This document shows positions 17,543-44,950 of a stretch of DNA of 64,000 bases, one piece after another (position 1 is the stretch's first letter; the number at the start of each line of letters is the position of its first letter). Position numbers and translations under genes: made by a program. The stretch is taken from the IMG/VR virus record IMGVR_UViG_3300017963_000188, positions 1-64,000 of that record; one strand, given 5' to 3'. The notes under the pieces are model-generated. The model saw only the letters and a list, made by a program, of their open reading frames with translations, did not search any database and had not been told where the DNA came from.

Positions 17543-18547
17543 ATGACAATGTATAGATATTCAAGATCATGGTTTGAGGTTGGTGATTATATAAAGCAAG
17601 AGCTACGTGACATGACAACTTGGGCTCTTGTCATTGGTAAGCTAAAGAATGGTGCAGAGAAGGTCATAGCCGTTGATTCTGATCGAGGAATACCTGCTAT
17701 CAGATCTACCAGTGGGTGGTATCCAAGTCCTGTTAGGATCGATGAATCTGAAATCCCTGAAAAGTTCCTAAAGAAGATTTTGAAGAAAAAGAATCAGGTT
17801 GGTGCTTCCAAACAAGCTAAAGATGTGACCTTCCCTGAGATGTGGAACAAGGTCAAGAAGGTATATGATCAGACCCAGAAGCAGATAGAAATGCTTCCTT
17901 GGCTTGGTGATGTGGAACTTATGGCAGCAGGTAGAGATGAATACTATACTGAGGATGTTAAAGAAATATATGATGAGATGATTAAGTATGAGGAAATACT
18001 AGAAGATTTCCTTGCAAGATATAAGGGATATCGTCCCGCTCACAAACAAAGCTCTGCCCTCAGAAAAATTGCTCAGGACATTGTAGTTAAAGAAGGTCTT
18101 TTCTTTGGTCCAAAGTTCAAAGAGAAAGGTATTAATCAAGTAGCTGGTGTATATAAAAAAGACCTCAAGAATTTCATTGAGAAGGAAATCCCTAAGAAAT
18201 ACCACCTCCCAGACCTAGCTGCTAATGTCTCTATTGATATAACCCCACATCCAGAATTCCTCATGTTCACTGTCAATGCAGAGGTATGGGATGAAGTGGG
18301 GAACAATAAGATCAGTGACATCACCATCAAAGCTGAAGGGGAAATAGACATTAGTGGGAAAGGTGAACTCGATATTTCCATGGTGGGTGCATACAGGCAT
18401 GAAACGATAGACACCAAAACAAAGAAAGAAGAGTTCAGCTTTGTGCCTGGAAAAGATGCTACTGATGCTGCACTGAAGGCTCTGGTAAAGAAAATAAAGA
18501 ATGTCCTTACCTGGGAAGGTGAGGGACTCTTTGCTATGTTTGACTAG
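17543..18547 (+). CDS. MYRY-leader multi-segment protein with internal KQA and LRKIA linkers
   Basis: MTMYRYSRSW; VGASKQA; KQSSALRKIAQD. Confidence 0.75.
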   Translation: MTMYRYSRSWFEVGDYIKQELRDMTTWALVIGKLKNGAEKVIAVDSDRGIPAIRSTSGWYPSPVRIDESEIPEKFLKKILKKKNQVGASKQAKDVTFPEMWNKVKKVYDQTQKQIEMLPWLGDVELMAAGRDEYYTEDVKEIYDEMIKYEEILEDFLARYKGYRPAHKQSSALRKIAQDIVVKEGLFFGPKFKEKGINQVAGVYKKDLKNFIEKEIPKKYHLPDLAANVSIDITPHPEFLMFTVNAEVWDEVGNNKISDITIKAEGEIDISGKGELDISMVGAYRHETIDTKTKKEEFSFVPGKDATDAALKALVKKIKNVLTWEGEGLFAMFD

Positions 18548-18807
18548 TGATAAAAGAACTCGTCCCAATATTCACAGAATACATCCCTGAAAATCTAGAA
18601 GAGGGAAATCTCTATATTTCAGATAAATATCAGACCTCAATCCATCTTTGTTGTTGTGGCTGTGGGAATCAGGTGGTAGTTACAGACCAATGGAAGATTC
18701 TTGTAGACGATGACAAGAAGGTGACTATCTCACCATCAATTGGTAATTGGAACTTTCCATGTAAGTCTCACTATTTTATCTGCAAAAACAAGGTAGTTTG
18801 GTTATAG
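18547..18807 (+). CDS. DUF6527-like protein
   Basis: HLCCCGCG..W..TISPSIGNW..PCKSHYFI. Confidence 0.75.
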   Translation: MIKELVPIFTEYIPENLEEGNLYISDKYQTSIHLCCCGCGNQVVVTDQWKILVDDDKKVTISPSIGNWNFPCKSHYFICKNKVVWL

Positions 18808-18889
18808 TCCAAATGGAACTTTGAAATCTGTTTCAATTTCCTGAAAAAATCCTTGTATATTCCAGTTATCCCAGAATATTCTAGAATAA

Positions 18890-18981
18890 CCAGCTTGCGC
18901 TGGGCTCATTAGAGCAGACCACTTGTACGGCTCGATTTGAGTCTTCCCCCCCAAGGGTCGGAGTCGGCAAGTGGTCTGCTC
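18890..18981 (+). ncRNA. candidate structured small RNA
   Basis: GC-rich intergenic; perfect 14-bp stem GAGCAGACCACTTG/CAAGTGGTCTGCTC extended by G-U-containing helices; 5' CCAGC/GCTGG hairpin. Confidence 0.45.
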
Positions 18982-19004
18982 ACCTTATTTTCCCAATTTA
19001 AAAA

Positions 19005-19033
19005 TTTAAAAATCTGAAAAGTTTCGGTATAGA
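19005..19033 (+). promoter_or_regulatory. phage promoter TTTAAA-N17-TATAGA
   Basis: exact consensus, then AGGAGGT and the ORF at 19052. Confidence 0.85.
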
Positions 19034-19051
19034 GTTGTAGGAGGTGACGAG

Positions 19052-19429
19052 ATGAAATTCAGAGTCGAACTCGAAGTCACTGAGCGTGGTATCCTGGCCA
19101 ATGGTCAAGTCCTGACTCATGTCCGTACCATGCACATGCCTGACCGTCGATTCTACACAGGTGGTATCACCAGCAATGACAAGCGGCTGGTCTACCGTCG
19201 TGATCTGGTCCGTAAAGAACTCAAAGAGTGCTATCAGGTCAATCTCCCCAGGGGTGCCGAGATCGGGACAAAATGGACCATCGAGGTCGAAGTCGAAAAG
19301 TTCTGGGGATGGTATCATGGTGATGCTGATGACGTGACCAGCTTCGAGGATGAAGACTACGATGCCTATAGCATCGATATGGCCGATGATGATGTCCCAG
19401 TCACCCCCAACCATTTGGTAGGAGAGTGA
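19052..19429 (+). CDS. hypothetical protein
   Basis: promoter, RBS, GC-richer codon usage. Confidence 0.75.
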   Translation: MKFRVELEVTERGILANGQVLTHVRTMHMPDRRFYTGGITSNDKRLVYRRDLVRKELKECYQVNLPRGAEIGTKWTIEVEVEKFWGWYHGDADDVTSFEDEDYDAYSIDMADDDVPVTPNHLVGE

Positions 19430-19432
19430 GGA

Positions 19433-19771
19433 ATGAGGATTGGAATCAACTTTATGGACAACGATTTTGGTAACACCTTCCATGGTTTTGCCAAGGTGTT
19501 TCTAACAGCGGTGGACTGGAACGAGACGGTGGAGGGAAATTTCACCAAAGAAAAGCTGGCCAAGATAATCAATGACATGATGCTGCCCATGTATCTTCTG
19601 TTCCAAAGTAATGGTCAATGGGAACATACCCCAAGCATCAACATGCAGGTGTATCCAGAACATATCTACTTGAATGAAGAGATTGATGAAAAGCTCAAGA
19701 ACTTTGAGTCCTGGGCCAACTACTCATTTCTCTACATTGACACAGATAACCAGCAGTCTGAGATTTGGTGA
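19433..19771 (+). CDS. hypothetical protein
   Basis: ORF in operon. Confidence 0.7.
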   Translation: MRIGINFMDNDFGNTFHGFAKVFLTAVDWNETVEGNFTKEKLAKIINDMMLPMYLLFQSNGQWEHTPSINMQVYPEHIYLNEEIDEKLKNFESWANYSFLYIDTDNQQSEIW

Positions 19772-19783
19772 AAGGAGAACATT

Positions 19784-20137
19784 ATGGATTTTGACAGGTA
19801 CAAGAATGGTATGCCCTGGCCACAGAAGAAGGAGTATGTGAACCCAAAGGTGGAAGAGGTGGAGGAACACTTTGTTGGAACCATCCGTCAGATTGAAGCG
19901 GCTCGTGCCGATGCTATTGAAAGGGGTGAGGCTGAGTACAAAGAAGCTCGTCGAGCCTATGGTGCTGAGACTGCCAGGCTCGAAGCCCAGTTCAAAGCTG
20001 ACCTCGAAGAAGAGACGGGTCTTCAGAACCATCCAAAGAAAGACAAGCTCTATGCAAAGGCATGGGAGCGTGGTCATTCTGGTGGGCTCTCTGAGGTTTA
20101 CAACGAATACCTGGACCTTTCCGATCTTCTAGAGTAA
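19784..20137 (+). CDS. hypothetical coiled-coil protein
   Basis: AGGAG RBS; C-terminal KLYAKAWERGHSGG. Confidence 0.75.
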   Translation: MDFDRYKNGMPWPQKKEYVNPKVEEVEEHFVGTIRQIEAARADAIERGEAEYKEARRAYGAETARLEAQFKADLEEETGLQNHPKKDKLYAKAWERGHSGGLSEVYNEYLDLSDLLE

Positions 20138-20193
20138 TTACCAATACCCACCAATAAATATCATACCTAGTATAGTTCTATAGGAGGCTCAAG

Positions 20194-20328
20194 ATGGGAG
20201 ATAAAGAGTATAAGGAGATTTGTAAGAGAGTCCCTTGGTACGTTAGGATCACATTTCCCGATGTGGTACTGCCAACTGTAGCTTTGGGAATCGTAGCTTA
20301 CATGATTTACCGAGCCTTCTTCAGATGA
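20194..20328 (+). CDS. 44-aa membrane protein (absent from the ORF track)
   Basis: AGTATAGTTCTATAGGAGG upstream; MGDKEYKEICKRVPWYVRITFPDVVLPTVALGIVAYMIYRAFFR. Confidence 0.6.
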   Translation: MGDKEYKEICKRVPWYVRITFPDVVLPTVALGIVAYMIYRAFFR

Positions 20329-20453
20329 GCCTCTATACTGTCCAGAGAGCCAGTAGAGACGATTCTCTCTATGGACCCATACATGGAACAGATGATGATC
20401 AAAAGACTCTCTGTGGGCAATCTATAGACGAGAACTGTTGAAGGAGCAAAGCA

Positions 20454-20648
20454 ATGATGGTGAGCCTGAAGGGTCTGGTTAAAAACATTTCTGAAGTCCT
20501 CAACGACCCAGAAGTGAAAGAAATGTACCCTCATAGTGGTGGTTTTGCTTACACCCTTGAAGAGATGGCTAAGAACATGGAAGAACTCAAGGCAAGGAAA
20601 AAGGAGGGAGAGAAGGTCATTGATGAATTCTTCTCTTTATATGTATGA
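20454..20648 (+). CDS. hypothetical protein
   Basis: AGGAG RBS. Confidence 0.55.
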   Translation: MMVSLKGLVKNISEVLNDPEVKEMYPHSGGFAYTLEEMAKNMEELKARKKEGEKVIDEFFSLYV

Positions 20649-20869
20649 AGGTACAATTTGACAAGATAGGATTTCATAGCAAGAAGTCTGGGAAATGTCC
20701 GGGATGTGGTAAGAGAGCTACCAGGTCAAAGGAATTTTATCAAACCCACAATCCATGGAATAAAGATAGTGAGGGGAATATAAAGACCCCTCAGGACATC
20801 ATGGAAGAACTGAAGGTTAGATGTAAGGAATGGGAAGAAGAACCTACTTACCATGCTCGTTGTGAATGA
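20645..20869 (+). CDS. hypothetical zinc-ribbon protein
   Basis: CPGCG. Confidence 0.65.
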   Translation: MKVQFDKIGFHSKKSGKCPGCGKRATRSKEFYQTHNPWNKDSEGNIKTPQDIMEELKVRCKEWEEEPTYHARCE

Positions 20870-20914
20870 TCTATTTGTATGTCTCTCTATATGAAACTAT
20901 TGAGGGAGACATAA

Positions 20915-21319
20915 ATGGAATTCATTCAAGAAAATCTAGACCTCATTCTCAAAATCGTCAGTCCTATCCTACTAGCTCTGTTGTCATGGGGTTCAGTGAA
21001 GCTAACACAGCTCATCAAAAATAAGGTCAAGGATGAAGAGACAAAGCAAGTATTGCTGAAGCTCAATGATGCTTTGTTCACAGCCGTTAAAGATGTCCAG
21101 CAGACCATTGTGTCTGATCTCAAAGCAGCCAATGTTGATGGAAAATTGACTGGAGAAGAGATCCAAGACGTGAAGTCTAAGGCTATTGAAAAAGCAAAAT
21201 CATTCCTGGGCTCTAGCATCTCAGATATGCCTGGAACATTAGGGATGACCCAAGAAGAGTTTGAAAAATATATATCTTCAAAACTCGAAGCCATTGTTCT
21301 AGATCTTAAAAAGGAGTGA
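20915..21319 (+). CDS. holin-like (LL-H type) membrane protein
   Basis: N-terminal TM, then AVKDVQQ..GKLTGEE..KAIEKAK..IEA-like tail. Confidence 0.5.
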   Translation: MEFIQENLDLILKIVSPILLALLSWGSVKLTQLIKNKVKDEETKQVLLKLNDALFTAVKDVQQTIVSDLKAANVDGKLTGEEIQDVKSKAIEKAKSFLGSSISDMPGTLGMTQEEFEKYISSKLEAIVLDLKKE

Positions 21320-21322
21320 TCA

Positions 21323-21511
21323 ATGCCTATACCATTTGATCGTTTCAGATTATTGAATGAACCTACAAAGAGGTTACGAAATGAGTCTCGATATATGGGG
21401 CATGTCAAAGTAGATGAAGAAGATCCGGGTATAGAACTAGCTCCAGGACAAGAAGTAGAATTACCCCCTAGTCCTGAAGTTATTCTAGATATAGAAATCC
21501 CGGAGAAGTAG
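21323..21511 (+). CDS. hypothetical protein
   Basis: AGGAG RBS. Confidence 0.55.
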   Translation: MPIPFDRFRLLNEPTKRLRNESRYMGHVKVDEEDPGIELAPGQEVELPPSPEVILDIEIPEK

Positions 21512-21512
21512 G

Positions 21513-21776
21513 ATGCTTTCAAAACAACTCTATGATATATCAAGAAAAATAGCAGCAAAAGATGTATATGTATGGACCTTCTATGAATGTGAGCATGGAG
21601 GGGATATGGATATGTATGCTGCTGATGTAACTAGTTCAGGTGGTGAGATCTTAGACCAGAAGCTCAATGATGATGAATGTGTCATGAAAGTAAAAGTGAA
21701 AGACTGGGATTCATTTATAGAAAGATTCAAAAACACAGAGACATTTGAATTCTGTAGTCTTTCAGATTTTGTTTAG
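21513..21776 (+). CDS. hypothetical acidic protein with an LYDISRKIAA leader
   Basis: ORF in operon. Confidence 0.65.
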   Translation: MLSKQLYDISRKIAAKDVYVWTFYECEHGGDMDMYAADVTSSGGEILDQKLNDDECVMKVKVKDWDSFIERFKNTETFEFCSLSDFV

Positions 21777-21799
21777 ATGTAACATAAAGGATAAAGATA

Positions 21800-22237
21800 A
21801 TGCTATCTATATCCCCTTGGAACGTAAAACCTCCTCACATCCCATCTAATCAAATAAAGCTCAACAAGCTCATTTCAAAAATGACGAGTGAAGGGTGGAA
21901 GGGACGACCCATTCTTGCTTTGAAGTATTCAGATACGGTTAGAGCCTTAACGGGAAGCCACAGGATAGAAGCTGCTAGAGCTTCAGGGCTCAAAACTATC
22001 CCTGTCCTTACCCTAGACGGTCCCTGGTTTGAAAATGTCCTCAAAGCTGATTATGGGCTCAGTGCAGACCTGGACCTAGACGATGTGTTATGGCATGTTC
22101 AACTTACCTATTGGGGAAGACATAGAATAGCCATGCTTGCAAAAAAACATGGACACAAGAAATTCCATGATGTGATGATGAGAGAGGGAAAACAATCTCG
22201 ATCTCCAGTTATGAAGCCAGTGCTCAATCCTGCCTGA
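21800..22237 (+). CDS. ParB/Srx N-terminal domain protein
   Basis: GWKGRPILAL..ALTGSHRIEAARASGLKTIPV. Confidence 0.8.
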   Translation: MLSISPWNVKPPHIPSNQIKLNKLISKMTSEGWKGRPILALKYSDTVRALTGSHRIEAARASGLKTIPVLTLDGPWFENVLKADYGLSADLDLDDVLWHVQLTYWGRHRIAMLAKKHGHKKFHDVMMREGKQSRSPVMKPVLNPA

Positions 22238-22339
22238 TTCAACTAGATTCAATTTCTGTAGAAAAAATTTACAGATTCTGACTTCCAAAACTAAATCTTG
22301 ATGGTATAGTATATAGAACATTTTACCTGGAGGCTTACT

Positions 22340-24313: not shown

Positions 24314-24318
24314 TATAG

Positions 24319-24855: not shown

Positions 24856-24889
24856 GAATATGAAAAAAAATCCCAGAGAAAATAATATT
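24826..24889 (+). repeat. 27-bp direct duplication (period 37)
   Basis: AAAAAAAATCCCAGAGAAAATAATATT at 24826 and 24863. Confidence 0.85.
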
Positions 24890-24901
24890 GGGGAGGTGGA
24901 T

Positions 24902-25814: not shown

Positions 25815-26855
25815 ATGAAAACTATAGAATTTGGTATCCCCCTGAATATCAGGGATGGAATGATTAGCTTGAATGACCTAGTGTCTTGTCTCGGACTCAG
25901 CCCCAAATCAAGAAGTAGTGTGAAGAAACGAATCGGTGACCCCCACCTGAGCTATGAAGTAGTAGATGGGAATCGAACCCTCATGGTAACGAAGCAAGGG
26001 GTAAAAGAATTGTCTGGTACGCTTCGTAAAGAGGAGGCTCAGACCAGAATCAAACAATTGCTGACTCTGCTGAGTGATGATGTTTATGAGCCCCCTGTCA
26101 CATCCTTGGCTGTGGTGGAAGCAGAAGTATTTGAAGCCAAGGTAATCAATCTTGATGAAGACCCAGATAGTTTCAACCCCCATGAGTTCCCTAACTCAAA
26201 TCCGATGGAAGGTCTTGATGACCTGATGGTGTATCAAAGACAGTTTCAGGGACTCCCTGTCGAGTTCAGAACCAATGGTCAGATACCGGTGCTGACCAGA
26301 GAGCAGTTGGGGGAGAAGCTGGGATATAAACACCCACGTCTATCAATAGGGAAGATCCACAGAAATATTGAAGGGGGTCTAATAGGGCATAGCTGGGAAA
26401 CCGATTTGGTTTCTGGGGACCCTCAAAAGGGAGGGGGTCGAAGAAAGACTTGGATATATGACCTGGCAGGTATCTTGAAAATATGTGCTCGGTCCAATCA
26501 ACCTCTGGCAAAAGACTTCTCTGATTTCTGTTGTGACACAATCCTGAAAATCATGACCCACCCCTCAAGAGAAGAAAAGGTCATTGACCAGTTCTGTGAT
26601 CGAATCATGGCAGTGGGGGGCAGGTTGGAGATTTATCGTAACAGAGCAATCAGAGCTGAAACGACCAGTCAGATTCAGGTACGTGAAACATCCAAGCTCA
26701 GACTGAAGGTGTCAGAACTAGAAGAAGAGAATGAAGAACTCAAGAAGATAGTGAGACACCAGGGGAGGAAGATTAATTTCTTGGAGGGGGAGGTGGAGAG
26801 ATTAGAGGACGAGCTGGATATAAGAAGTACCATTTCTGTTGTCAGGACTTCCTAG
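25815..26855 (+). CDS. Bro-N-like DNA-binding protein with C-terminal coiled coil
   Basis: VLTREQLGEKLGYKHPRLSIGKIH..YDLAGILKICARSNQPLAKDF; paralog of 38281-39207. Confidence 0.6.
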   Translation: MKTIEFGIPLNIRDGMISLNDLVSCLGLSPKSRSSVKKRIGDPHLSYEVVDGNRTLMVTKQGVKELSGTLRKEEAQTRIKQLLTLLSDDVYEPPVTSLAVVEAEVFEAKVINLDEDPDSFNPHEFPNSNPMEGLDDLMVYQRQFQGLPVEFRTNGQIPVLTREQLGEKLGYKHPRLSIGKIHRNIEGGLIGHSWETDLVSGDPQKGGGRRKTWIYDLAGILKICARSNQPLAKDFSDFCCDTILKIMTHPSREEKVIDQFCDRIMAVGGRLEIYRNRAIRAETTSQIQVRETSKLRLKVSELEEENEELKKIVRHQGRKINFLEGEVERLEDELDIRSTISVVRTS

Positions 26856-26880
26856 TTTCAAAAAATAAAAAAATAAAAAC

Positions 26881-27106
26881 TACAAAATCCCAGAAAGTTT
26901 CAGTATAGAATAGTAGCTGGGGGTAACGGTTACACGACCTAACCCCTCCAGGAGAAGGAACGCTTCGGGGGGATCTGTCCTGGGGAATATGGGACAGGTC
27001 GGTCCTCCCCATCCCCCTAGCCTTTCGACCGGGGGTATCTGTTCTCGAAACCCCTTAGGAGCATCAAGCTCTATATTTATATACTGAGACTTTTCTGATT
27101 TTTAAA
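26881..27106. other. non-coding cassette A between convergent promoters (core on the minus strand)
   Basis: TACAAA-N17-TATAGA (+, 26881-26909), TTTAAA-N17-TATATA (-, 27106-27078); core 26956-27012. Confidence 0.75.
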
Positions 27107-27147: not shown

Positions 27148-27474
27148 ATGTACCGATATTCCAAGAGAGCTGACTATTTAACTCAAAAACATCCTGAACT
27201 AAGAAAGGGAAACACCATGTACCGTTATAGACAAGCCCGTAGAGTTAGAGCTGCCTCCTTATTAGAGATGCAGCGTGAATACAATCGTGGATTGTCTGAC
27301 CTCGAAAATGGGTATGCTGTCATGATGAAGTTGGCAGATACCTATGCTGCTGAATCTCAATATGTGAATCACCAAGCCCTCGATACTCTCAGAGAAGTGC
27401 TGGCTGACCTCCATGACCTGGTAAATGTCAACCTGAGAACTATTCAGACTCAACTTTGGGAGGATGCAAATTAA
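27148..27474 (+). CDS. MYRY-leader protein with two tandem leaders
   Basis: MYRYSKRA at 27148 and MYRYRQARRVRA at 27217. Confidence 0.75.
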   Translation: MYRYSKRADYLTQKHPELRKGNTMYRYRQARRVRAASLLEMQREYNRGLSDLENGYAVMMKLADTYAAESQYVNHQALDTLREVLADLHDLVNVNLRTIQTQLWEDAN

Positions 27475-27607
27475 GCCATGGATACCCAAGAGCCATAAGA
27501 AAGCATCCCTAGAACGTATGAAAGGTTATGGTTCATATTCTCGTAGAAGTCGTAGAACCAGAATGGTGAGAGCTACAGTAGAATGGGGTGTAGACGAAGA
27601 GGAATGA
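27464..27607 (+). CDS. 47-aa ORF with an RRSRRTRMVRA motif (absent from the track)
   Basis: MQIKPWIPKSHKKASLERMKGYGSYSRRSRRTRMVRATVEWGVDEEE. Confidence 0.4.
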   Translation: MQIKPWIPKSHKKASLERMKGYGSYSRRSRRTRMVRATVEWGVDEEE

Positions 27608-27668: not shown

Positions 27669-27911
27669 ATGTACCGATACCGTAAAGCCCGAAGGGTGAG
27701 AGCCATGGGTATATTGCCTGATGAGATACTTGTTCGTTTGGATCAGCTAGAGAAAGATGCCAAGACGTTACAGAAGCAATACCAAGTCTTGGCAAATGAC
27801 ATGGCAATGAACCCACAGGTTGACCCTGAAGATGTTGATGACTTTATAGATGTAGTCAATGCTGTGAACGACCTCGTATATGATATCCAGAAGTATCGGA
27901 GAGGTTACTAA
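27669..27911 (+). CDS. MYRY-leader small acidic protein
   Basis: AGGAG RBS; MYRYRKARRVRA. Confidence 0.75.
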   Translation: MYRYRKARRVRAMGILPDEILVRLDQLEKDAKTLQKQYQVLANDMAMNPQVDPEDVDDFIDVVNAVNDLVYDIQKYRRGY

Positions 27912-28368: not shown

Positions 28369-28811
28369 ACTCCAGAGTAAAGCACATCATTGACACGATG
28401 GATCATTCAGATCCATTTGCCCCCAATCTGAATGAATGGCCCCTGGTGATAGTGACCTACCCCAAAGTATCCAGGCAGGTACTTATCGAGCATTTAAAAA
28501 ATGGAACTGACCTCACCCCCTTTGATAAGGTAGGGGAGTATTATGGTCTAGTGCTTGATAGTAGGAATGATGAACAGGCAACGGCTATGGAACGTAGAGC
28601 AGGGGCAGACTCTTTAGCTCAGATACAAAAACGTCTCGATAGGGGTGAGTGCAATCTTACATGTATAGCCATAGTGAACAATGCAGGTCCCTTCCTAAAG
28701 ACTGTACTCAACATCGTACTCATGCTCCAGAACATATCAATCCCAGTCAAGATGTTCAGTCATTTGCTTGAAGCAAAGTCCTGGGCTCTGAATGAAATTT
28801 ATAGAAAATAG
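28365..28811 (+). CDS. hypothetical protein, possibly STAS/SEC14-like
   Basis: EWPLVIVTYP..LVLDSR..CIAIVNN..PVKMFSHLLEAKSWA pattern. Confidence 0.4.
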   Translation: MNSRVKHIIDTMDHSDPFAPNLNEWPLVIVTYPKVSRQVLIEHLKNGTDLTPFDKVGEYYGLVLDSRNDEQATAMERRAGADSLAQIQKRLDRGECNLTCIAIVNNAGPFLKTVLNIVLMLQNISIPVKMFSHLLEAKSWALNEIYRK

Positions 28812-28814
28812 TTC

Positions 28815-29010
28815 TACAAAATCTCAGAAAGTTTCAGTATAGAATAATAGGGAGAGGGGACTTCAAAAGACCCCTGGACCCATGGGGAGGTCTGGTCTGT
28901 AGACAGTCCCTTGATAGATCTCCCCGAAGCCATGCTCCCTCAACCGGCCCCAGGTCTCGATACCCTTTTGCCTGTCATTATTATATACTGAAGAAAATCT
29001 AGATTTTAAA
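28815..29010. other. non-coding cassette B between convergent promoters
   Basis: TACAAA-N17-TATAGA (+, 28815-28843), TTTAAA-N17-TATATA (-, 29010-28982); core 28881-28935. Confidence 0.75.
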
Positions 29011-29020
29011 TAAAAAGTTC

Positions 29021-29215
29021 TACAAAATTCGAGAAAGTTTCAGTATAGAATAATAGAGGGAGGAACCGAAAAGGACCTGGGCTCATGGGGAGGTCTGTCT
29101 TAAGGGATACTCCCCTGGACAGATCCCCCCGGAGCGTTCCTACTTCGACTGGCTCCGAGTCTCAGTACCCTTTAACCAATCACTATTATATACCGAAGCC
29201 AGATCAGATTTTAAA
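29021..29215. other. non-coding cassette C between convergent promoters
   Basis: TACAAA-N17-TATAGA (+, 29021-29049), TTTAAA-N17-TATATA (-, 29215-29187); core 29085-29141. Confidence 0.75.
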
Positions 29216-31368: not shown

Positions 31369-31659
31369 ATGCTATCACAACACTTGAGAAGATTGGCTAG
31401 GAAAATTACTAGGTTACATGACCATGATGCTAAGTTCCAAGACCGTAGAGTCTGGGATATGGTCAATAGAGCTGTAGATGAAGCACAGAGAAAGGACCAG
31501 GAGCTAGATGCTTGGATAGGTCCTAGCTGGTCAGGGGAGGACATGATTTATCTGGTTCCGACTGGTCAGCATTCACCAGGTACACAGCCATTGAATGTGA
31601 CTTTGACTCCTGATATGACTCGTGAACAGATGAAGACACAACTCTTCTCAGTTGTTTAG
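31369..31659 (+). CDS. protein with an LRRLARKI leader
   Basis: AGGAG RBS. Confidence 0.7.
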   Translation: MLSQHLRRLARKITRLHDHDAKFQDRRVWDMVNRAVDEAQRKDQELDAWIGPSWSGEDMIYLVPTGQHSPGTQPLNVTLTPDMTREQMKTQLFSVV

Positions 31660-32766: not shown

Positions 32767-32800
32767 ATCGTCTCCTCTCTTGGAGGGTTAGTGTTACTAC

Positions 32801-32829
32801 TCTATACCGAGACTTTTCAGATTTTTAAA
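32801..32829 (-). promoter_or_regulatory. phage promoter TTTAAA-N17-TATAGA
   Basis: exact consensus on the minus strand. Confidence 0.8.
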
Positions 32830-33010
32830 TATTAAAAGGTGGGGGAGGTGAAAAAAAAGTTTCAGAAAAATAATATATATACTGGTTGATAGGTGTTGAT
32901 AGGTGAAAAAAAGTTCCAAGAAAATAATATATCTAGGGACCTGATTAGAATCAAAAAATAATCTCTACGGTATAATATAATGGGGTTATGGAGCTGAAAG
33001 GAGTCATTGA

Positions 33011-36495: not shown

Positions 36496-36499
36496 TTTT

Positions 36500-36903: not shown

Positions 36904-37320
36904 TTAGAGTGAAGACCCGTTTTTATCCAACCACTTGTTGAACGCTTCATCGAAGATGCCCCAGGCTCGTACCTCGTCCCAGTGTTTTGATTGTCCATGA
37001 ATCATTCCTATGATCCAATATTTGAAGTTACCCTGGGATTGTATGGCACGACGAACCTTCAAACACATTTGACGTGCCGTTTCAGGATAGACCTGTGGTG
37101 ATAAGGTTTGAGCTATCTTTCTAAAGGTCCACCCCTGCATTCTCAGCTTAAAGGCTTCCCAATGTCTAGGATTTAACCCCCTCACCACTCCATAGTAGCA
37201 AACTATCTCTACGAAGTATTCCCACTCTGCTGTTACAACAATAGGATCTGATTGATGTTTTGATGGATGGTGCTTGATTGGTTTGAGTCGTTTAGCTAAT
37301 CTTTCGTATCGGTATTTCAT
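36904..37320 (-). CDS. sigma70 region-4-like HTH protein
   Basis: LNPRHWEAFKLRMQGWTFRKIAQTL..ETARQMCLKVRRAI. Confidence 0.55.
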   Translation of the reverse strand: MKYRYERLAKRLKPIKHHPSKHQSDPIVVTAEWEYFVEIVCYYGVVRGLNPRHWEAFKLRMQGWTFRKIAQTLSPQVYPETARQMCLKVRRAIQSQGNFKYWIIGMIHGQSKHWDEVRAWGIFDEAFNKWLDKNGSSL

Positions 37321-37369: not shown

Positions 37370-38233
37370 TCATTTTCTTGCACCACGAGTCAGTTTGTAG
37401 TACCGACACTGTACCGAGTTTAGGCTACGTCCCAATTTTTTTGCCACAGCAACTAGATTAGGAAGACCCGTTTCGAGTCTTGACTCTATAGCCATGTCAA
37501 TTATGATTCTATCCTCTTCTGGAGTGTATTTACGTTTCCTATCCTTCTTTACTTCCACCCCATCCCAGATCCCATTGGCTACGTCTCGTATCCGTTTCGA
37601 GTCTTTGAGGTTCGTGTGTGGATTGTCCAATATGGCTTGGGCTATCTCCTTTACCCCCTTCTCTGTCAATCTGCGGTCACGGTAAGAGATTCGTTTCCAA
37701 TACCTGTGTACGGTCTGGTAGCTCACCCCCAGGACCTGAGCAGCTCTGGTGAAGTTCCATCTCTGGTCTTTCCAACGACGACCCAATTTAGAGGCACGTT
37801 GACATATCGCTGCTTTGGACCGATTGAATTCATCTGCTATATCATCCAGCTCTTTCCACTCCAACCTATCCAGCATCATCCAATCATCTTGTTTTTTCCA
37901 TTTCCTATTTGGAGCTTCGACCCACCCATTTTTTTCGCATACACTTTGTATTGCCTTAGGTGTCCGGTCCAGTTTCTCTGCTATCTCTTTATTGCTGTAG
38001 CCTTGGAGTCTATAAATAAGTACCAGTTCCAGTTCATTATCGGTCCATCTTCTACCAGCTTTCTGGACCCATCTTTTTTTTCTGCATCTGGTAAGTATGG
38101 CTGCCTTGGTTCGATTCAGTTTTTTAGCAATCTTCTCACGATCCACCCCACGTTCAATTAGTGACTTGAGTAGTCTATCTTCAGTTTCGGTCCAAGGTCT
38201 TCTGAGACTCTCTTTGAACTTTCGTTTCGTCAT
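37370..38233 (-). CDS. tandem Myb/SANT-like HTH repeat protein
   Basis: WTETEDRLL, WTDNELEL, WKKQDD and YTPEEDRII repeats; paralog of 5285-6007. Confidence 0.7.
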   Translation of the reverse strand: MTKRKFKESLRRPWTETEDRLLKSLIERGVDREKIAKKLNRTKAAILTRCRKKRWVQKAGRRWTDNELELVLIYRLQGYSNKEIAEKLDRTPKAIQSVCEKNGWVEAPNRKWKKQDDWMMLDRLEWKELDDIADEFNRSKAAICQRASKLGRRWKDQRWNFTRAAQVLGVSYQTVHRYWKRISYRDRRLTEKGVKEIAQAILDNPHTNLKDSKRIRDVANGIWDGVEVKKDRKRKYTPEEDRIIIDMAIESRLETGLPNLVAVAKKLGRSLNSVQCRYYKLTRGARK

Positions 38234-38280
38234 GGTCTATAATACCATGATTGGAAATGTTTGGGGAATGTCTGGAAAGT

Positions 38281-39207
38281 TTAGACACGATTCTTAGGCT
38301 GGGAAGTCTGGTAGATGTTAGACATCATATACATGTCACGGTTCTGCTTCTTCAGACGCTCGATTTCAGCATCCTTTTCTTTGATGATCTGGTCTTTCTC
38401 TTTTGATTCCTTACCCATCTCGTAGACTTGATTCAGAACAGCAGCCATATCACAACCCTGGCTTTTCTCTGACATTTCAGCTTTGACCAGACCAACCTGG
38501 ATCTCGACCATTGCCTGGGTCAGCCAACGACGGAACATTGGAGCCCTCTTCATGGTGGAAGTGCTGCAAATTTCAATGGCACCGACCAGGTTGAATCCGA
38601 CCACGTTACGTTCTTTACCATCCTTTGTGATGGTAGGGACCAGACAACTGTAACCTTCCAGTTTCTGACGAGTCACGATATTTGAAATACTCCGCTTCGG
38701 GTCTTTGTATCCCAACGCTTTCCCGAGCTGTTCACGAGTCACGATGGGATTTTGATTCTCAGCATACATACAGATGCTGTGATTGCCATACATCTTGGTG
38801 CCTGCCAGAGAATATCCGTTGGTAGGGACCAGATCGGTAACCACTTCTGCCTCAACAACCTCAGGCTCAACAACCTCAGGCTCAACAACCTCAGGCTCAA
38901 CAACCTCAGGTTTGGGCATAGGTTCGGGTTTGGATTCAGGTTTGGGCTCAGGTTTGGACAGATAGTTCTCCTCGAACACCATCATATCATCAGCGATGGA
39001 TTCGGTTTTGTGAGCCAGCTTCTTTCCGAACTTATCCACCATCTCACAGACCCCTTCCATGGACACAACCCTCTCCCCTGCATCTTTCCAGACACATTCA
39101 GGAGAGAGCTTCTGAGCTACTGTGGTCGGTGAATAGGTGGAACCGATAGCTTTGATGAGATTCTTCAGGTTGACTACCACGAATCCTCTTGAGACTTGAA
39201 ATTTCAT
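38281..39207 (-). CDS. Bro-N-like DNA-binding protein with a PEVVE repeat linker
   Basis: IVTREQLGKALGYKDPKRSISNI..FNLVGAIEICSTS..APMFRRWL. Confidence 0.6.
   Translation of the reverse strand: MKFQVSRGFVVVNLKNLIKAIGSTYSPTTVAQKLSPECVWKDAGERVVSMEGVCEMVDKFGKKLAHKTESIADDMMVFEENYLSKPEPKPESKPEPMPKPEVVEPEVVEPEVVEPEVVEAEVVTDLVPTNGYSLAGTKMYGNHSICMYAENQNPIVTREQLGKALGYKDPKRSISNIVTRQKLEGYSCLVPTITKDGKERNVVGFNLVGAIEICSTSTMKRAPMFRRWLTQAMVEIQVGLVKAEMSEKSQGCDMAAVLNQVYEMGKESKEKDQIIKEKDAEIERLKKQNRDMYMMSNIYQTSQPKNRV
38851..38910. repeat. 15-bp exact tandem repeat x4 (in-frame PEVVE)
   Basis: ctcaacaacctcagg x4. Confidence 0.9.
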
Positions 39208-39225
39208 ATCGTCACCTCCTATGAC

Positions 39226-39254
39226 TCTATACTGAAACTTTTCGGATTTTTAAA
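39226..39254 (-). promoter_or_regulatory. phage promoter TTTAAA-N17-TATAGA
   Basis: exact consensus, then AGGAGGT and the ORF at 39207. Confidence 0.85.
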
Positions 39255-39339
39255 TTTTTATATCTTGGAAGGTTAAATTTTTTTGCCGTGTAATATTAGA
39301 TGTTTAACCCACTTTTTATATTTTTTACCTCATAATCGG

Positions 39340-39467
39340 TCAAGGGGGGATCACAGTGATCCCCCCTTGAACCTGTGTCATATAATAATTTTTCTGCATA
39401 TTATCAGTAGGTTAAGCCCACTTTTTTATCCCTTTATATTTAGGGGGGATCATGGTGATCCCCCCTA
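39340..39467. repeat. two GGGGGGATCA-centred palindromes
   Basis: TCAAGGGGGGATCAC-A-GTGATCCCCCCTTGA (39340-39370) and TAGGGGGGATCA-TGG-TGATCCCCCCTA (39441-39467). Confidence 0.9.
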
Positions 39468-39505
39468 TAATTTTTGACCACCTGTAGAATGATTAGGAGG
39501 AAACG

Positions 39506-40096: not shown

Positions 40097-40119
40097 ATTT
40101 TTTTGCAACGAGGATATAG

Positions 40120-40653: not shown

Positions 40654-40713
40654 TTATCCATTTATAGATCTTTAAATATAGGTTATGTTGTTATTCTATA
40701 TTGGAGATTTACC

Positions 40714-41877
40714 ATGAGCTTCGAATCTATAGTTTCAAGAGTAGTACACAGATCCAGTGATAAGTATGAGTTCTTAGAAGGCAATCCTGAACTCACTTTC
40801 AAAGTTGGTACAGATTGGATTCCTGATTTAGAATATCCAATGGATGACCAAGACCTGGCAGACCTAATACAAGACATGATTTACGAAGATTGTAAAGCTA
40901 TGGGTGGGGACATCTCAAAGAGTGAAGTGGATGTAGATAAGGTAGGTTTTGGTGGTGGTGACAAGACATGGAAAAGCACTACCTTTACAGCCATTGTCAC
41001 AGTAGGACCCTTCGAAGGAAAAGTCTATGGGAAAGGTACTGGACTAGTTGAAGAGTATGATGCTTGGATTCGTCCAGAGAGTTTCAGCATTATGTTTGGT
41101 GGAAGAGGAGAAAAGGAAAGCTCCAATAAAGAAGGTTCCAAAGAAAGCTCGAATAAAGAAGGTTGGCTCAAGAAATTCATCGTATTACTCAAGAACATCA
41201 ATCTTGGTGACTATAGAACCATGACCGATGAAGATTGGGATTGGATCATTGATGCCTATCGTCCCGAAGCTGATCATTTTGAGTATTTTCTCAGATTAAA
41301 TGAAAATCGCACCTTTGACAAAGAGAATGATCTCAATTCCCTGGTCATTGAGGCTAACAACATCTTATCAGAACTTGAAGCTCAACTCTTGAAGATGCAA
41401 CGAGATGTGGATACCCCTGAACTGAATCAAACCTTGGATCTGATTCATGAGCTTCAGAAGACAAAAACATCAGCTCTTGAAGGACTCAAGGTCACAGACT
41501 ATGGTTTCTTTGAAGCTCCCCCAGATGATCTAGATCCTGACTTTGCTATGACTGCTGAAGTTACATTTTCAGTATCTGGACCTCTGCTAGCAAAACTTCT
41601 GGGTCGTCAACAGAGAATGGTTGAGAGAGTCTTGAAGGAACTCAAACCTGACAAGGCTATTAGACAACTCCATGATGGGCCTGCCTCTGATACTATCCTG
41701 AAGGCTTTGAAACGCTATGTTGACCGATCTGTCTATGATATGGGTCAGGAAGAATATGATCGAGACGCATACATGGAACGATATGATTGGGGCAATACTG
41801 AATATTGGGAAGCTAGGATTGGCCCCAATTCAATTACCTACCGAGTCGAGTTGGATGTGTTGGGTGAGTGGGACTAA
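40714..41877 (+). CDS. acidic multi-segment protein with a duplicated KESSNKEG linker
   Basis: leader SFESIVSRVVHRSS; 24-bp near-duplication around 41113-41165. Confidence 0.75.
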   Translation: MSFESIVSRVVHRSSDKYEFLEGNPELTFKVGTDWIPDLEYPMDDQDLADLIQDMIYEDCKAMGGDISKSEVDVDKVGFGGGDKTWKSTTFTAIVTVGPFEGKVYGKGTGLVEEYDAWIRPESFSIMFGGRGEKESSNKEGSKESSNKEGWLKKFIVLLKNINLGDYRTMTDEDWDWIIDAYRPEADHFEYFLRLNENRTFDKENDLNSLVIEANNILSELEAQLLKMQRDVDTPELNQTLDLIHELQKTKTSALEGLKVTDYGFFEAPPDDLDPDFAMTAEVTFSVSGPLLAKLLGRQQRMVERVLKELKPDKAIRQLHDGPASDTILKALKRYVDRSVYDMGQEEYDRDAYMERYDWGNTEYWEARIGPNSITYRVELDVLGEWD

Positions 41878-42125
41878 ATAGGGTACATATCACTGTACCA
41901 GCGATCAATCTCATCAAAGAGTTCTTTGTCAGCTTTATCATATTCTTTTTTGATCTTCAGAAATGCTTCAGCCAAGGTACGTAATTTGGAGCTTGGATCA
42001 AGTTCTTTTACAGCTATTTCTGCAATCCCTGCAATAGTGGTATCCACTTTATTATCATGGATCATTTCCATAAGCTCTGTTTCAGTCATTGCTCTGACTT
42101 TACGTGCTCTTTTATATCTATACAT
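41874..42125 (-). CDS. MYRY-leader small protein
   Basis: MYRYKRARKVRA. Confidence 0.75.
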   Translation of the reverse strand: MYRYKRARKVRAMTETELMEMIHDNKVDTTIAGIAEIAVKELDPSSKLRTLAEAFLKIKKEYDKADKELFDEIDRWYSDMYPI

Positions 42126-42127
42126 GC

Positions 42128-42670
42128 CTACACCCTCTCTTGAAGGTCCTTGATTACTTCTTCCAGAATATATTGAGCTTTGTAGGGCATTTCTGATTCA
42201 ATACCAGGGGCAACTTTGTTGATCTCTTTAGCCACACTATCAGCAATCCTTATTGCTACTTCATCAAGCTCTGGGTATTCACCAGCTCTCACCTTCCTGG
42301 ATCTCCGTGATCTTTTCCCTACATACTTCTGTAGATCTTTGTATCGTTGCTCAGTTCCTGCTTCACCACCACTCTCTTCCCACTCTTCAGGAGTTCCACC
42401 CCACCTTGGATCAAGACCTGGGTGAGTCACTACTCCATTAGCCAGTTCCATTTTCTCCATCTTACCAAACTGGTCAGAATCGAGATCATAGATACGTTTG
42501 ATTTTAGTGGGCTTATTATTATACATCACTTCATCACCCACATAGTAGGTTTTGTCACCCACTTGCATTTTATCCTTATTCACTTCTTCTCTGGCTGTCT
42601 TCTGGGATCTTGCCACAACCCTATCTGCCATTTTTCTATACATGCTTGAAGACATCACTGATTTTTCCAT
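42128..42670 (-). CDS. two-segment protein with KTA and RSRKVRA linkers
   Basis: MYRKMADRVVARSQKTA; KRSRRSRKVRA. Confidence 0.75.
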   Translation of the reverse strand: MEKSVMSSSMYRKMADRVVARSQKTAREEVNKDKMQVGDKTYYVGDEVMYNNKPTKIKRIYDLDSDQFGKMEKMELANGVVTHPGLDPRWGGTPEEWEESGGEAGTEQRYKDLQKYVGKRSRRSRKVRAGEYPELDEVAIRIADSVAKEINKVAPGIESEMPYKAQYILEEVIKDLQERV

Positions 42671-42679
42671 GTCAATCTC

Positions 42680-43009
42680 CTACAATCTGATTGTACTATC
42701 TGCAATTGGTTTGTTATTGATAAGAGCCGTGACTTCTGGGACGTTTACTTCTAGAACAATCTCACTTGGATCTATATCATGATCATCTAGATAATCAAAG
42801 ATGATAGGTTCAAGATTATCTATAGCAAACAGGAATCTGCCCAAAGAGAAGTCATATCCTGCATCCATAAGTTCTTCGTGAATTTCTATGAGCACATCAT
42901 CTTGGAACATGCCATATTCGTCCATGATACCATCGAATTCTGGCATTATTTTTTTTGCTAATCTCCTCAAATAAGAAACTGTTTTGAAGTTTGCTGCTAA
43001 TCGAAACAT
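42680..43009 (-). CDS. acidic protein with an LRRLAKKI leader
   Basis: GAGG RBS. Confidence 0.7.
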   Translation of the reverse strand: MFRLAANFKTVSYLRRLAKKIMPEFDGIMDEYGMFQDDVLIEIHEELMDAGYDFSLGRFLFAIDNLEPIIFDYLDDHDIDPSEIVLEVNVPEVTALINNKPIADSTIRL

Positions 43010-43020
43010 GATTTTGACCT

Positions 43021-43293
43021 CTACAAACCACTGTCTTTGATTTCTTGGTTTGTTTCCTGTAATCTTTTATTTAGAAAGGTCATTACCTCAAGGAACCGAT
43101 TAAGTTGTTTGACCCTTGATGGATCGTCAAAGGAAAATCGATCAGGTTTAGAATCAACAATCTCATCAATAAGACGTTTTGTTTCTTGGCTTAGTTCTAG
43201 ATGTTTTTCAGTCTGATTTCTGAGTTTTCTGAGAGGTGTTACTTCGTCTACATGTCTCTCAAGTAAACCAGCTCTTTTTGGATATCGGTACAT
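43021..43293 (-). CDS. MYRY-leader small protein
   Basis: MYRYPKRA. Confidence 0.75.
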   Translation of the reverse strand: MYRYPKRAGLLERHVDEVTPLRKLRNQTEKHLELSQETKRLIDEIVDSKPDRFSFDDPSRVKQLNRFLEVMTFLNKRLQETNQEIKDSGL

Positions 43294-43296
43294 ATC

Positions 43297-43488
43297 TTAC
43301 CTCTTTCGTTCCAGCTTAGCATGGAGTTCTTCAATCTTTAACCATAGTCTCCAAATCACATACCCTTCAATGACCATGATTGCGTATGGACCTCCAACCT
43401 TCAGAAATTCAAGCACCTTTTGTGCTGTTGTCAATGTGGCATCGATCATATCTGACCTTTTACAGATAAACTTTCCCGTCATCCCCAA
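43297..43488 (-). CDS. small single-TM protein (holin-like)
   Basis: GGPYAIMVIEGYVIW followed by a charged tail; start probably MIDAT. Confidence 0.45.
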   Translation of the reverse strand: MGMTGKFICKRSDMIDATLTTAQKVLEFLKVGGPYAIMVIEGYVIWRLWLKIEELHAKLERKR

Positions 43489-44950
43489 TATATGGGTCTA
43501 CCCCACCAAAGGTGTGACTGATATCGGTGAGAACTTTCCCTACTTCTTCAGTGTAATCTGAGCTATCCCAGAATCCTGCCCCATGACCATTTCTAGTAAG
43601 CCAGAAATTATGTCCAAGGCTCACACTATCCATTTCATCTACAGCTTCTTTCCCAAGCTTTTCCTCAGCCAAAGAAATGAAACCTTCAATGTCTTCACGG
43701 CTTTCTTTCAGAGCTTCATCTGAGAAATCACTAATATCAACCAGGTCATCCATTGGAGTCCCTGAATTATCATCTTCATCTTCAAAATGGACACTGGACC
43801 ACAGAGCTGTCTCTAGATATGAATCGAGAAGGTCATCTTCCCAGTTTGCTTGTTTTGCACCCATAGAAGATTCTTTCATATCTTCTTTTATTTCTTGCTT
43901 TCTTTCATAGACATGTTCTGCAATCTCATGCCAATTGATTTCTCTCAGGCTTGCATTGAGGATATCAGAGTAAGGTCCACTTGGAAGATCTGGAGCATTC
44001 TCTTCAGCATCGTTTTGAAGCATCCTAGCAATGTCTCCCTCACTCATATCTTCATCAAGAGCTGTTTCTGCATAGCCATTGATCTCATCACCCTGGTCCA
44101 TCCACAGAGCCCAGTTCCAAGTCTCATAGTTGGTCCATCCATTGTACTCTGCTGTTTTTGAACTCTTAACTACCTTGTCTGAATATTCTTTTTCAAGACT
44201 TTCAGTATCCCACTGATCATCAACTAATGCTTGGGCTTGAGGAGAATCCTCTACAACCTCTGCATCAATAGAGTAGTCTGGCCATTGTCCTCCCTGTAAA
44301 GGAGAATCTACAACCACTCTCCCACCATCTTCCATGATAATTTCAAATACTTCATGTAATTCAAACTGATCTTCATAATAACCACGTTCATCGAAATCAT
44401 CACGATCCCATTCACTGATAGGATGTCCAATTTCATCACCGTGATCTTCAAGTATTTCCCAATCACTACGAGTTACATACCAATTTCTCATCTTATTGAA
44501 GAGTTCTTCACTGATGTCTTCATAGTTACCAGCGATGTTAAGTTCATGATATGTTTCAATTTTCTTGATTGGATGGTTTGCTGCTTTCTTATTTGCTGCT
44601 ATATCAAACATAGTGCTCACCTCGAAAAGTGTTATTTCAACTTCTTTCCCCATATCTATAATAGAGATATCTTTCCCCAAACCTTGTTTACCAATATCCA
44701 TACCAGCTCTTTCGGCTTGCTTTTTAGCTACCTCTTCAAACTTAGCTGAAAGAACTTTGTTGGGGAATTTATATTTGAGTTCAAAGTCATCGAAAATCTC
44801 AAACTCTGAAGGCTGACCAGATGTTCTCACACCCTTATACTTTTTAGCTATTCGATCAAGTTCAGAAATGAAAGTGTCCATTTCCATAGCTTTTTTGCTA
44901 TTAGCACTTTTTCTGCCAGACCACTTATTTGACCAATTGTATCTATACAT
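43460..44950 (-). CDS. MYRY-leader acidic polyprotein-like protein (about 4 segments)
   Basis: linkers KSANSKKA, IAANKKAA, KSSKTA and GAKQA; segments YNGWTNYETWNWALW and GHNFWLTRNGHGAGFWD. Confidence 0.8.
   Translation of the reverse strand: MYRYNWSNKWSGRKSANSKKAMEMDTFISELDRIAKKYKGVRTSGQPSEFEIFDDFELKYKFPNKVLSAKFEEVAKKQAERAGMDIGKQGLGKDISIIDMGKEVEITLFEVSTMFDIAANKKAANHPIKKIETYHELNIAGNYEDISEELFNKMRNWYVTRSDWEILEDHGDEIGHPISEWDRDDFDERGYYEDQFELHEVFEIIMEDGGRVVVDSPLQGGQWPDYSIDAEVVEDSPQAQALVDDQWDTESLEKEYSDKVVKSSKTAEYNGWTNYETWNWALWMDQGDEINGYAETALDEDMSEGDIARMLQNDAEENAPDLPSGPYSDILNASLREINWHEIAEHVYERKQEIKEDMKESSMGAKQANWEDDLLDSYLETALWSSVHFEDEDDNSGTPMDDLVDISDFSDEALKESREDIEGFISLAEEKLGKEAVDEMDSVSLGHNFWLTRNGHGAGFWDSSDYTEEVGKVLTDISHTFGGVDPYIGDDGKVYL

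Follow-up and report, generated by a model that had tools for sequence, protein, structure and literature searches.

Two families of short N-terminal leaders on unrelated proteins of an uncultured jumbo phage: candidate propeptides of the prohead-maturation machinery

Introduction

Bacteriophage T4 marks the internal proteins IPI-III, Alt and others with a capsid targeting sequence (CTS) that is removed by the prohead protease gp21, an enzyme which also uses its consensus site to trim itself at either end. Herpesvirus assemblin processes its scaffold as well as itself, at (V/L)-x-Ala↓Ser (arrows, here and below, mark cuts, established or presumed), and prohead proteases of the gp21/assemblin fold act inside proheads. 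The cleavage sites of phiKZ-like giant phages end in Glu. Phage proteins that are carried in the head and injected act before phage gene expression, and include anti-restriction proteins, polymerases and host-modifying enzymes; where such proteins are ORFans, ordinary annotation misses them. Here we describe two families of short leaders, one beginning MYRY and the other built on a Leu-basic-basic-aliphatic-Ala core, which head otherwise unrelated proteins encoded in positions 1 to 64,000 of the IMG/VR virus record IMGVR_UViG_3300017963_000188 (hereafter the window) and beyond it, and we compare them with the putative processing sites of the prohead protease of the same genome.

The window is the first 64 kb of a single virus contig of 358,038 bp (G+C 40.6%) found in the JGI metagenome record Ga0180437_10000024, and all sampled words of the contig are present in two public runs, one a sediment and the other a seawater metagenome. 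Its source is an uncultured jumbo tailed phage. A first-pass annotation of the window had proposed that the MYRY leaders are a new capsid-targeting and cleavage signal carried by packaged, injected effectors.

A leader beginning MYRY heads unrelated proteins

In the six-frame translation of the whole genome MYRY is found 16 times, compared with 0-3 times for any of its 11 alternative permutations. Twelve of the 16 occurrences start substantial open reading frames (ORFs) or sit in frame within them, all at 17.5-102 kb. MYRY is also the commonest N-terminal tetrapeptide, present in 8 of 504 crudely called genes against 3 for the runner-up. The motif is thus enriched, and each of the seven starts that the first-pass annotation listed, at 17549, 27148, 27217 and 27669 on the plus strand and at 42125, 43293 and 44950 on the minus strand, was found again.

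Codon usage points to the peptide as the conserved entity. Over 12 MYRY sites Tyr is encoded by TAT (7) or TAC (5), and Arg by AGA (5), CGA (3), CGT (3) or CGG (1), while three 12-codon leaders of the type MYRY..AR.VRA differ from one another at 9-13 of 36 bases, mostly synonymously. The DNA upstream of the MYRY starts is not homologous, and a GGAGG ribosome-binding site precedes most of them. Since the codons vary synonymously and the upstream DNA is unrelated, selection acts on the peptide, as had been claimed earlier; for the same reasons a DNA-level repeat or promoter cassette was rejected.

The first member on the plus strand is a 332-aa ORFan (17549..18547, the ORF opening two codons earlier at 17543) which starts MYRYSRSW and lacks the basic-Ala ending seen in most members, so that the earlier description of the leaders as ending in basic residues and Ala stands with this exception. 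It has no Pfam or PHROG match, and an ESM Atlas search with it returned nothing usable. Downstream, a 108-aa protein (27148..27474) carries two tandem leaders, MYRYSKRA (27148-27171) and the in-frame MYRYRQARRVRA (27217-27252), ahead of a body paralogous to that of an 80-aa ORFan (27669..27911; 37% identity over 73 aa). The latter has the leader MYRYRKARRVRA (27669-27704), directly followed by Met, and has no relative among 5.8 billion proteins. On the minus strand lie an 83-aa ORFan (41874..42125) with the leader MYRYKRARKVRA (42090-42125), again directly followed by Met; a 90-aa ORFan (43021..43293) with the leader MYRYPKRA (43270-43293); and a very acidic 496-aa protein (43460..44950; net charge -70) in which the leader MYRYNWSNKWSGRKSANSKKA (44888-44950) and a Met precede a body carrying DUF7249 and a phrog_1915 domain. 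A 203-aa minus-strand ORF (53813..54424) with in-frame MYRYRTGLGLREA at 54247 is a doubtful member, since no ribosome-binding site precedes its MYRY. Further members are found beyond the window at 65200 (+), 97224/96972 (-) and 102143 (-).

Two proteins carry internally an Arg-rich block ending in VRA, both of them at the positions reported earlier. In a 180-aa protein (42128..42670, minus strand) KRSRRSRKVRA (42284-42316, residues 119-129) is preceded by 118 residues and followed by an acidic C-terminal part of 51 aa. In a 47-aa plus-strand ORF (27464..27607) RRSRRTRMVRA (27542-27574, residues 27-37) is followed by only 10 acidic residues; this ORF is of uncertain status, and doubtful as a gene because its ribosome-binding site abuts the ATG. 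The block is conserved as a peptide, given that the Ser and Arg codons differ between the two copies, and is present in only seven proteins of the whole genome.

Behind the leaders the proteins diverge. In 21 N-terminal pairs the leader alone is shared, and by BLASTP the bodies are unrelated, the exception being the 27217/27669 paralogues, so that the earlier assertion of unrelated bodies holds for most pairs. The further assertion that the leaders give way to acidic sequence fits only about half of the MYRY bodies; net charges of -70 and -35 are found in two of the cargo proteins. The leaders carry a charge of +4 to +6 within 12-16 residues, with some, such as MYRYADEHDD and MYRYSRSW, barely basic. 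Met follows the leader directly in 3 of 12 cases (P=0.003), as if an old start codon had been retained. Almost all tagged bodies are ORFans: Pfam and PHROGs yielded almost nothing beyond the two domains of the 496-aa protein and a phrog_5162 domain behind an internal MYRY. This last occurs at residue 85 of the 96298-97224 protein, just before a complete phrog_5162 domain (residues 98-306, equivalent to profile positions 3-196), a span from which it follows that the phrog_5162 family itself does not include the leader. A strict leader DNA pattern gave no match in IMG/VR and matched only the phage's own contig among JGI metagenomes. A Sec or Tat signal peptide was considered and rejected, as polar or acidic sequence follows the leaders, with no hydrophobic stretch of 10 or more residues.

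A second leader family matches a site within the prohead protease

Comparison of all N-termini in the genome brought out a second leader, x-S-x-x-L-[RK]-[RK]-[ILV]-A-x-[KRN]-I, exemplified by MLSNDLRKIAKRI. Its 8-residue pattern L[RK][RK][ILV]A.[RKNEG][ILM] has 9 matches in the proteome (109,332 residues) where shuffling predicts 0.1. Eight of these fall at residues 6-14 of unrelated small proteins, five encoded beyond the window and three within it: a 96-aa protein (31369..31659, plus strand) starting MLSQHLRRLA↓RKI (MLSQHLRRLA encoded by 31369-31398); a 109-aa acidic protein (42680..43009, minus strand) starting MFRLAANFKTVSY-LRRLAKKI-M (42947-43009); and an 85-aa protein (57797..58054, plus strand) starting MVSNELRKIA↓ENM (MVSNELRKIA encoded by 57797-57826). 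The ninth match is at residue 286 of the prohead protease, where N-LRRVASRI forms the linker site LRRVA↓SRI. The peptides MYRYKRARKVRAMTE and MLSNDLRKIAKRIS are candidate substrates for this protease.

The two families meet in a 138-aa protein (36904..37320, minus strand) with the start MKYRYERLAKRL, which joins a MYRY-like beginning to the second leader's LA[KR] core (37294-37320 encodes MKYRYERLA). Its body resembles, by eye, a sigma-70 region-4 helix-turn-helix. Taken together, the two families comprise about twenty unrelated proteins in this genome.

Conserved Ala sites in the prohead protease and its neighbours

The protease, a 501-aa protein matching the PHROG family 'head maturation protease', is encoded at 211503-213008, followed by the gene for an acidic scaffold-like protein (213019-214116) and then by that for an HK97-type major capsid protein (MCP) of 291 aa without a delta domain (214801-215676). 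The portal (178643-180313), the large terminase (180640-182493) and a GroEL are likewise encoded outside the window.

A sequence search of the PDB with the protease found no match. Its protease domain was modelled with AlphaFold2 (residues 43-260, mostly at pLDDT above 85), and a fold search with the model gave Z 9.6 to T4 gp21 and Z 8-9.5 to the proteases of VZV, PRV, HSV and HCMV; on the strength of this model the enzyme has the T4 gp21/herpesvirus assemblin fold. In an alignment of 60 homologues (33-49% identity) the linker following the protease domain cannot be aligned except for one conserved island, hydrophobic-x-[K41/R15]-[A37/V10]-Ala(58/60)-Ser(32/60), whose Ala and Ser are Ala290 and Ser291 in this phage. 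A helical domain follows, so that a conserved Ala-Ser separates the protease domain from a C-terminal scaffold-like domain, as is the case for assemblin. The N-terminus, M-A-F-phi-[K40/R16]-[Y/T]-Ala7 (Ala in 56/60), and Ala37-Ser38 are similarly conserved. The simplest reading of these basic-x-Ala(-Ser) islands is that they are the protease family's own processing sites.

Two other features of the family are recorded here. Four invariant or nearly invariant Cys residues (C186, C189, C200 and C225) inside the assemblin-like fold resemble a zinc-ribbon insertion, which T4 gp21 and the herpesvirus proteases are without. In addition, many homologues (P0138, P0139, P0147, P0167, P0240 and others) reach lengths of 900-1,960 aa, with the match divided among two to five stretches, suggesting inteins or fusions in other members of the clade.

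The second leader is linked directly to the protease, through the linker site, and MYRY more loosely, both links being read from sequence. What the MYRY leaders share with the protease N-terminus is only the basic-x-Ala at residues 5-8, the specificity of the enzyme being deduced from conservation. The first Ala of MYRY proteins is residue 7 (four proteins), 8 (two), 5, 13 or 16, with K or R nearly always preceding it; in MYRY[RK][KRQ]A it occupies position 7, as in the N-terminus of the protease family, and at 65200 MYRYA↓D has a counterpart in FLKYA↓D of the protease itself. Across the genome, phi-x-[KR]-x-A starts 27 times within the first 20 residues of proteins, where the remainder of the protein sequences predicts 8.5 (P=3e-7). 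This 3.2-fold N-terminal excess is not a general effect of N-terminal composition, since in two relatives it is only 1.3- and 1.6-fold. When residues 1-300 of the protease (60-row alignment) were modelled in complex with the N-terminal 40 residues of the protein encoded at 41874-42125, the score was 0.00, which is not evidence either way.

The first-pass annotation had asked whether the capsid and scaffold precursors share an Ala site. The scaffold-like protein does have one, starting ...NRRPTSRRRRRA↓DAYEMN (...RRPTSRRRRRA↓DAYEMN), and a relative sharing 88% MCP identity keeps the junction as ...SYLRRA↓DEYDMN. The leader at 356970 contains SRRPTRTRRA, linking the Arg-rich block to the scaffold-like protein. 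The MCP, to which we return below, has no such site.

Leader families in related phages

By MCP identity, the nearest relatives are the uncultured huge phage LR745208.1 (485 kb; 79%), Tunturiibacter phage Tunturi_5 (46%) and Bacillus phage G (38%). The MCP family as a whole is very large and highly conserved, numbering 1,911 proteins at E<=1e-10, with 80-93% identity for the best 120. Leaders and proteases were compared over four full genomes and five partial loci.

LR745208 shows no MYRY enrichment, its single match being the same as the control. It has instead a 27-aa leader, M(T)TLRSKLIRLAHENPALRPHLLPLLK (also written TLRSKLIRLAHENP...), on at least nine otherwise unrelated proteins, in one of them internally. 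Two of the nine tagged genes are in the head module, adjoining the scaffold-like and MCP genes. As with the internal MYRY described above, the leader may be placed exactly before a complete domain, in this case phrog_3308, a family that is likewise without it, and it also heads other, unrelated metagenomic proteins. The leader, SKLIRLA↓HENP, may be compared with the protease of the same phage, whose linker site reads YLKAA↓HQTP and which carries TLIRLA↓S close to its C-terminus: the linker site and the leader's LIRLA↓HENP have the same uncommon residues, His at P1' and Pro at P4'.

In phage G the commonest N-terminal tetrapeptide is MKRL (11/687), and about 14 proteins start MKRL.[KR].A (leader MKRLIKKA↓S); the corresponding sites in its protease, gp19, are PVKIA↓G, LVKTA↓A, LEKVA↓S and LLKIA↓S. 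Four of its MKRL/MRRL-led proteins (NC_023719.1, 35181-36314, 178671-179219(-), 245994-246467 and 446709-447356) have in common [LMYF]-HGT-[SD] a few residues after the leader, a motif which we take to recall H-Y-E class ADP-ribosyltransferases or RNA 2'-phosphotransferases. Three Tunturi_5 proteins start MS[RK]SKLL.R.A (SKLLxRxA), among them gp205, which is annotated as an ADP-ribosyltransferase. ADP-ribosyltransferase-like proteins, namely gp205 and the HGT[SD] proteins, thus carry the tag in two relatives; the packaged Alt enzyme of T4 is of the same class. In one partial contig (L061) a protease with MLKVA↓S is encoded near a protein starting MMLRVA↓A, and in another, from a close relative (L089), the protease has ELKKIA↓S.

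Since each relative has a leader family of its own, resembling the sites of its own protease, such families are a trait of the clade. The apparent co-variation of leader and protease site between phages is suggestive, the genomes being few and the comparison falling short of statistical proof.

Interpretation and alternative explanations

We lean, by a modest degree of confidence, towards the MYRY and second leaders being short removable N-terminal propeptides that mark substrates of the prohead-maturation machinery. The tag, aromatic or aliphatic plus basic residues ending in Ala, would bring a protein into the assembling prohead; the very acidic scaffold-like protein and the protease's acidic tail may assist by attracting it electrostatically. 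The gp21/assemblin-fold protease would then cut after the Ala, as it appears to do in itself and in the scaffold-like protein. Internal tags (27217, 96972 and the ...VRA blocks) would be cleavable linkers, the same cut separating two modules. In this scheme we infer from the sequences that the tagged proteins are directed to the prohead, cleaved after Ala, retained in the virion and ejected into the host. That the cargo consists of injected effectors, as the first-pass annotation supposed, is a hypothesis, hinted at only by the ADP-ribosyltransferase-like cargo found in two relatives and by the two extremely acidic cargo proteins of this phage. The capsid-targeting and cleavage signal proposed in that annotation is supported in part, and indirectly, by the modularity of the leaders, the identity of the second leader with a protease site, the fold and Ala sites of that protease, the junction on the scaffold-like protein and the parallel families in relatives, and is less well served by the loose MYRY match, the MCP and the position of the MYRY genes.

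Several observations weigh against the propeptide interpretation. The phage is known solely from metagenomes, and autocleavage at the conserved protease sites is something that we infer. The RRVRA block and the KRA endings are basic at P2, where the protease linker has Ala/Val, and the RRVRA block has Val at P3; an exact protease match exists for the second leader, not for MYRY. The 17549 protein starts MYRY and has its first Ala only at residue 26. The MCP has no Ala site of this kind, and is 79-93% identical across relatives whose leaders differ greatly. Finally, the MYRY genes all sit at 17-106 kb, among small ORFs that carry an early-looking promoter motif, and none is in the head module; a late-promoter motif by which tagged genes could be timed was sought, and only the early-looking one could be defined.

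This last point bears on what we consider the strongest, if unlikely, alternative, that the tag is a degradation or regulatory mark, by which the phage protease or host Lon/ClpXP achieves timed removal or activation in the cytoplasm, with no packaging. The early-looking location of the genes would suit it, as would the resemblance of leaders to protease sites and the large share of small ORFans, typical of host-takeover genes, among the tagged proteins. It is harder to reconcile with the established site of action of prohead-fold proteases inside proheads, with the two tagged LR745208 genes beside the scaffold-like and MCP genes, or with the same kind of ending on the scaffold-like protein, and internal copies at domain boundaries are better suited to processing.

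Rather improbable, in our view, is an arginine-rich nucleic-acid-binding motif, of the lambda N or basic-arm type, that binds RNA or DNA and is not removed. The charge of the leaders fits this idea, and the R/S-rich blocks KRSRRSRKVRA, RRSRRTRMVRA and SRRPTRTRRA do look like nucleic-acid-binding low-complexity segments, but it leaves unexplained the invariant MYRY, the strict Ala ending, the exact match of the second leader inside the protease and the co-variation of leaders and protease sites between phages; moreover, some leaders are barely basic, as noted above.

We give very little credence to the tag as a functionless relic of duplication or recombination, be it a promoter or start cassette or a paralogous exon-like N-terminal piece. 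T4-type phages do shuffle early genes via regulatory cassettes, 27217 and 27669 are true paralogues and the genes cluster at 27.1-27.9 kb and 41.9-45.0 kb; yet no homology is seen upstream of the starts, and while the bodies are no longer recognisably related, the leaders differ at 25-36% of their bases by changes that are mostly synonymous, whereas a neutral relic would have been the first part to decay. Just as hard to credit is selection of the first four or five codons for translation initiation or early elongation: the position at the very start is fixed and a strong ribosome-binding site precedes most copies, but synonymous sites vary freely, in-frame copies of the motif are found within ORFs too, at domain boundaries, conservation extends to residues 7-12 and ends in Ala, and the second leader begins only at residue 6. 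Each of these rivals explains less than the propeptide interpretation.

If removable propeptides are indeed what the leaders are, a broader proposal may be made, which we hold tentatively and as no better than possible: that the whole of the very large, for the most part uncultured clade of G-like jumbo phages and megaphages loads its capsids by one rule, an N-terminal leader ending basic-x-Ala and cut by an Ala-cleaving assemblin-like protease, with leader and protease co-evolving in each lineage and MYRY being a second, private leader of the present phage. A leader tied to the head protease would then allow cargo to be listed from sequence alone in widespread uncultured giant phages, making the packaged and injected proteome of thousands of them readable. 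That cargo would include ADP-ribosyltransferase-like enzymes and very acidic proteins, the latter perhaps, at a guess, among anti-defence factors. Such a leader would likewise offer an existing tag by which foreign proteins could be loaded into large capsids.

Other elements in the window

A strongly conserved promoter-like motif, TTTAAAAATC-N12-CAGTATAGA-N6-TAGGAGGTG, or including the start codon TTTAAAAATC-N12-(C/G)AGTATAGA-N6-TAGGAGGTG-N5-ATG, occurs about 35 times, in the first 140 kb of the genome and between 320 and 358 kb, and the structural module is nearly devoid of it. Copies in the window are at 4031-4072, 6021-6062, 19008-19045, 26876-26916, 28797-28857 and 29003-29063 and, on the minus strand, at 32795-32837, 39213-39254, 52448-52488, 54982-55023 and 63586-63623. 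It is probably an early or middle promoter class giving near-leaderless transcripts. A 60-nt G+C-rich element is present as inverted copies, 78% complementary, at 26953-27012 and 29085-29144, each flanked by convergent promoter-like motifs; the stretch at 28.8-29.3 kb has several promoters and no long ORF. The locus may encode a small RNA or antisense RNA. Rfam found nothing in the window, and the predicted fold of the repeated element (26915-27075) was no better than those of shuffled sequences.

Two near-identical perfect palindromes (AGGGGGGATCA..TGATCCCCCCT; 25 nt, 92% mutually complementary) at 39343-39367 and 39442-39466, 74 nt apart, are intergenic, after the gene at 38281-39207, and could be hairpin terminators or a protein-binding site. 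That gene (minus strand) and the one at 25815-26855 (plus strand) encode, as judged by eye, a Bro-N/KilA-N-like central segment, and the former contains a tandem 15-nt repeat (38839-38913) encoding (EPEVV)n. Next to the MKYRY gene at 36904-37320, a 287-aa protein (37370-38233, minus strand) has four or five Myb/SANT-like helix-turn-helix repeats (RRxWTxxED...), again by eye.

Comparison with known systems

The closest parallel is the T4 CTS. Both are short N-terminal peptides (about 10 aa) on unrelated proteins; the T4 peptide ends in the consensus site of gp21, and the second leader would do likewise if the linker site of the protease is a processing site, MYRY resembling the protease sites less closely; the proteases share a fold, to judge from the model; the tagged genes are scattered outside the head module; and the tagged sets in relatives include ADP-ribosyltransferase-like proteins. 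The sequences, however, are not similar: the present leaders are basic, end in Ala and have no conserved Glu, and so do not belong to the T4 CTS sequence family, the cut here apparently following Ala behind basic residues and not Glu (L/I-x-E). Further differences are the presence of two leader families in one genome, with tandem and internal copies, and a system known from sequence alone.

With herpesvirus assemblin the likeness lies in the fold and in the near-invariant Ala-Ser of the linker, which is placed before a C-terminal helical scaffold-like domain in the position of the release site. Two differences may be noted: P3 is basic in the phage family (K/R in 56/60), and the phage motif is also an N-terminal tag on many accessory proteins, a use not known from herpesviruses. 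The apparent Ala↓Ser specificity would nevertheless extend the parallel between tailed-phage and herpesvirus maturation proteases beyond fold.

Three reports on the phiKZ-like giant phages 201phi2-1 and SPN3US (PMC5694885, PMC10052503, PMC7411985) describe many head proteins processed at one motif by a gp21-like protease, and to that extent these giant phages are alike. Their propeptides, borne by head and ejection proteins, are long, unlike one shared short leader, and the present clade is unrelated to them, being G-like with an HK97-type 291-aa MCP. The C-terminal tail of the HK97 protease and the cargo-loading peptides of encapsulins offer an analogy, as short peptides directing a protein inside an HK97-fold shell, and the C-terminal end of the LR745208 protease (TLIRLAS) is much like the leader of that phage; those signals, however, lie at the C-terminus and do not serve as cleavage sites. 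No paper turned up when open-access full text was searched for the LR745208 leader strings, the MYRY and LRKIA strings not being part of that search. A capsid-targeting propeptide removed by the prohead protease is, as a kind of signal, already known. What appears to be new are the sequences themselves, the predicted specificity for Ala, the clade, and the occurrence of two leader families per genome with tandem and internal copies.

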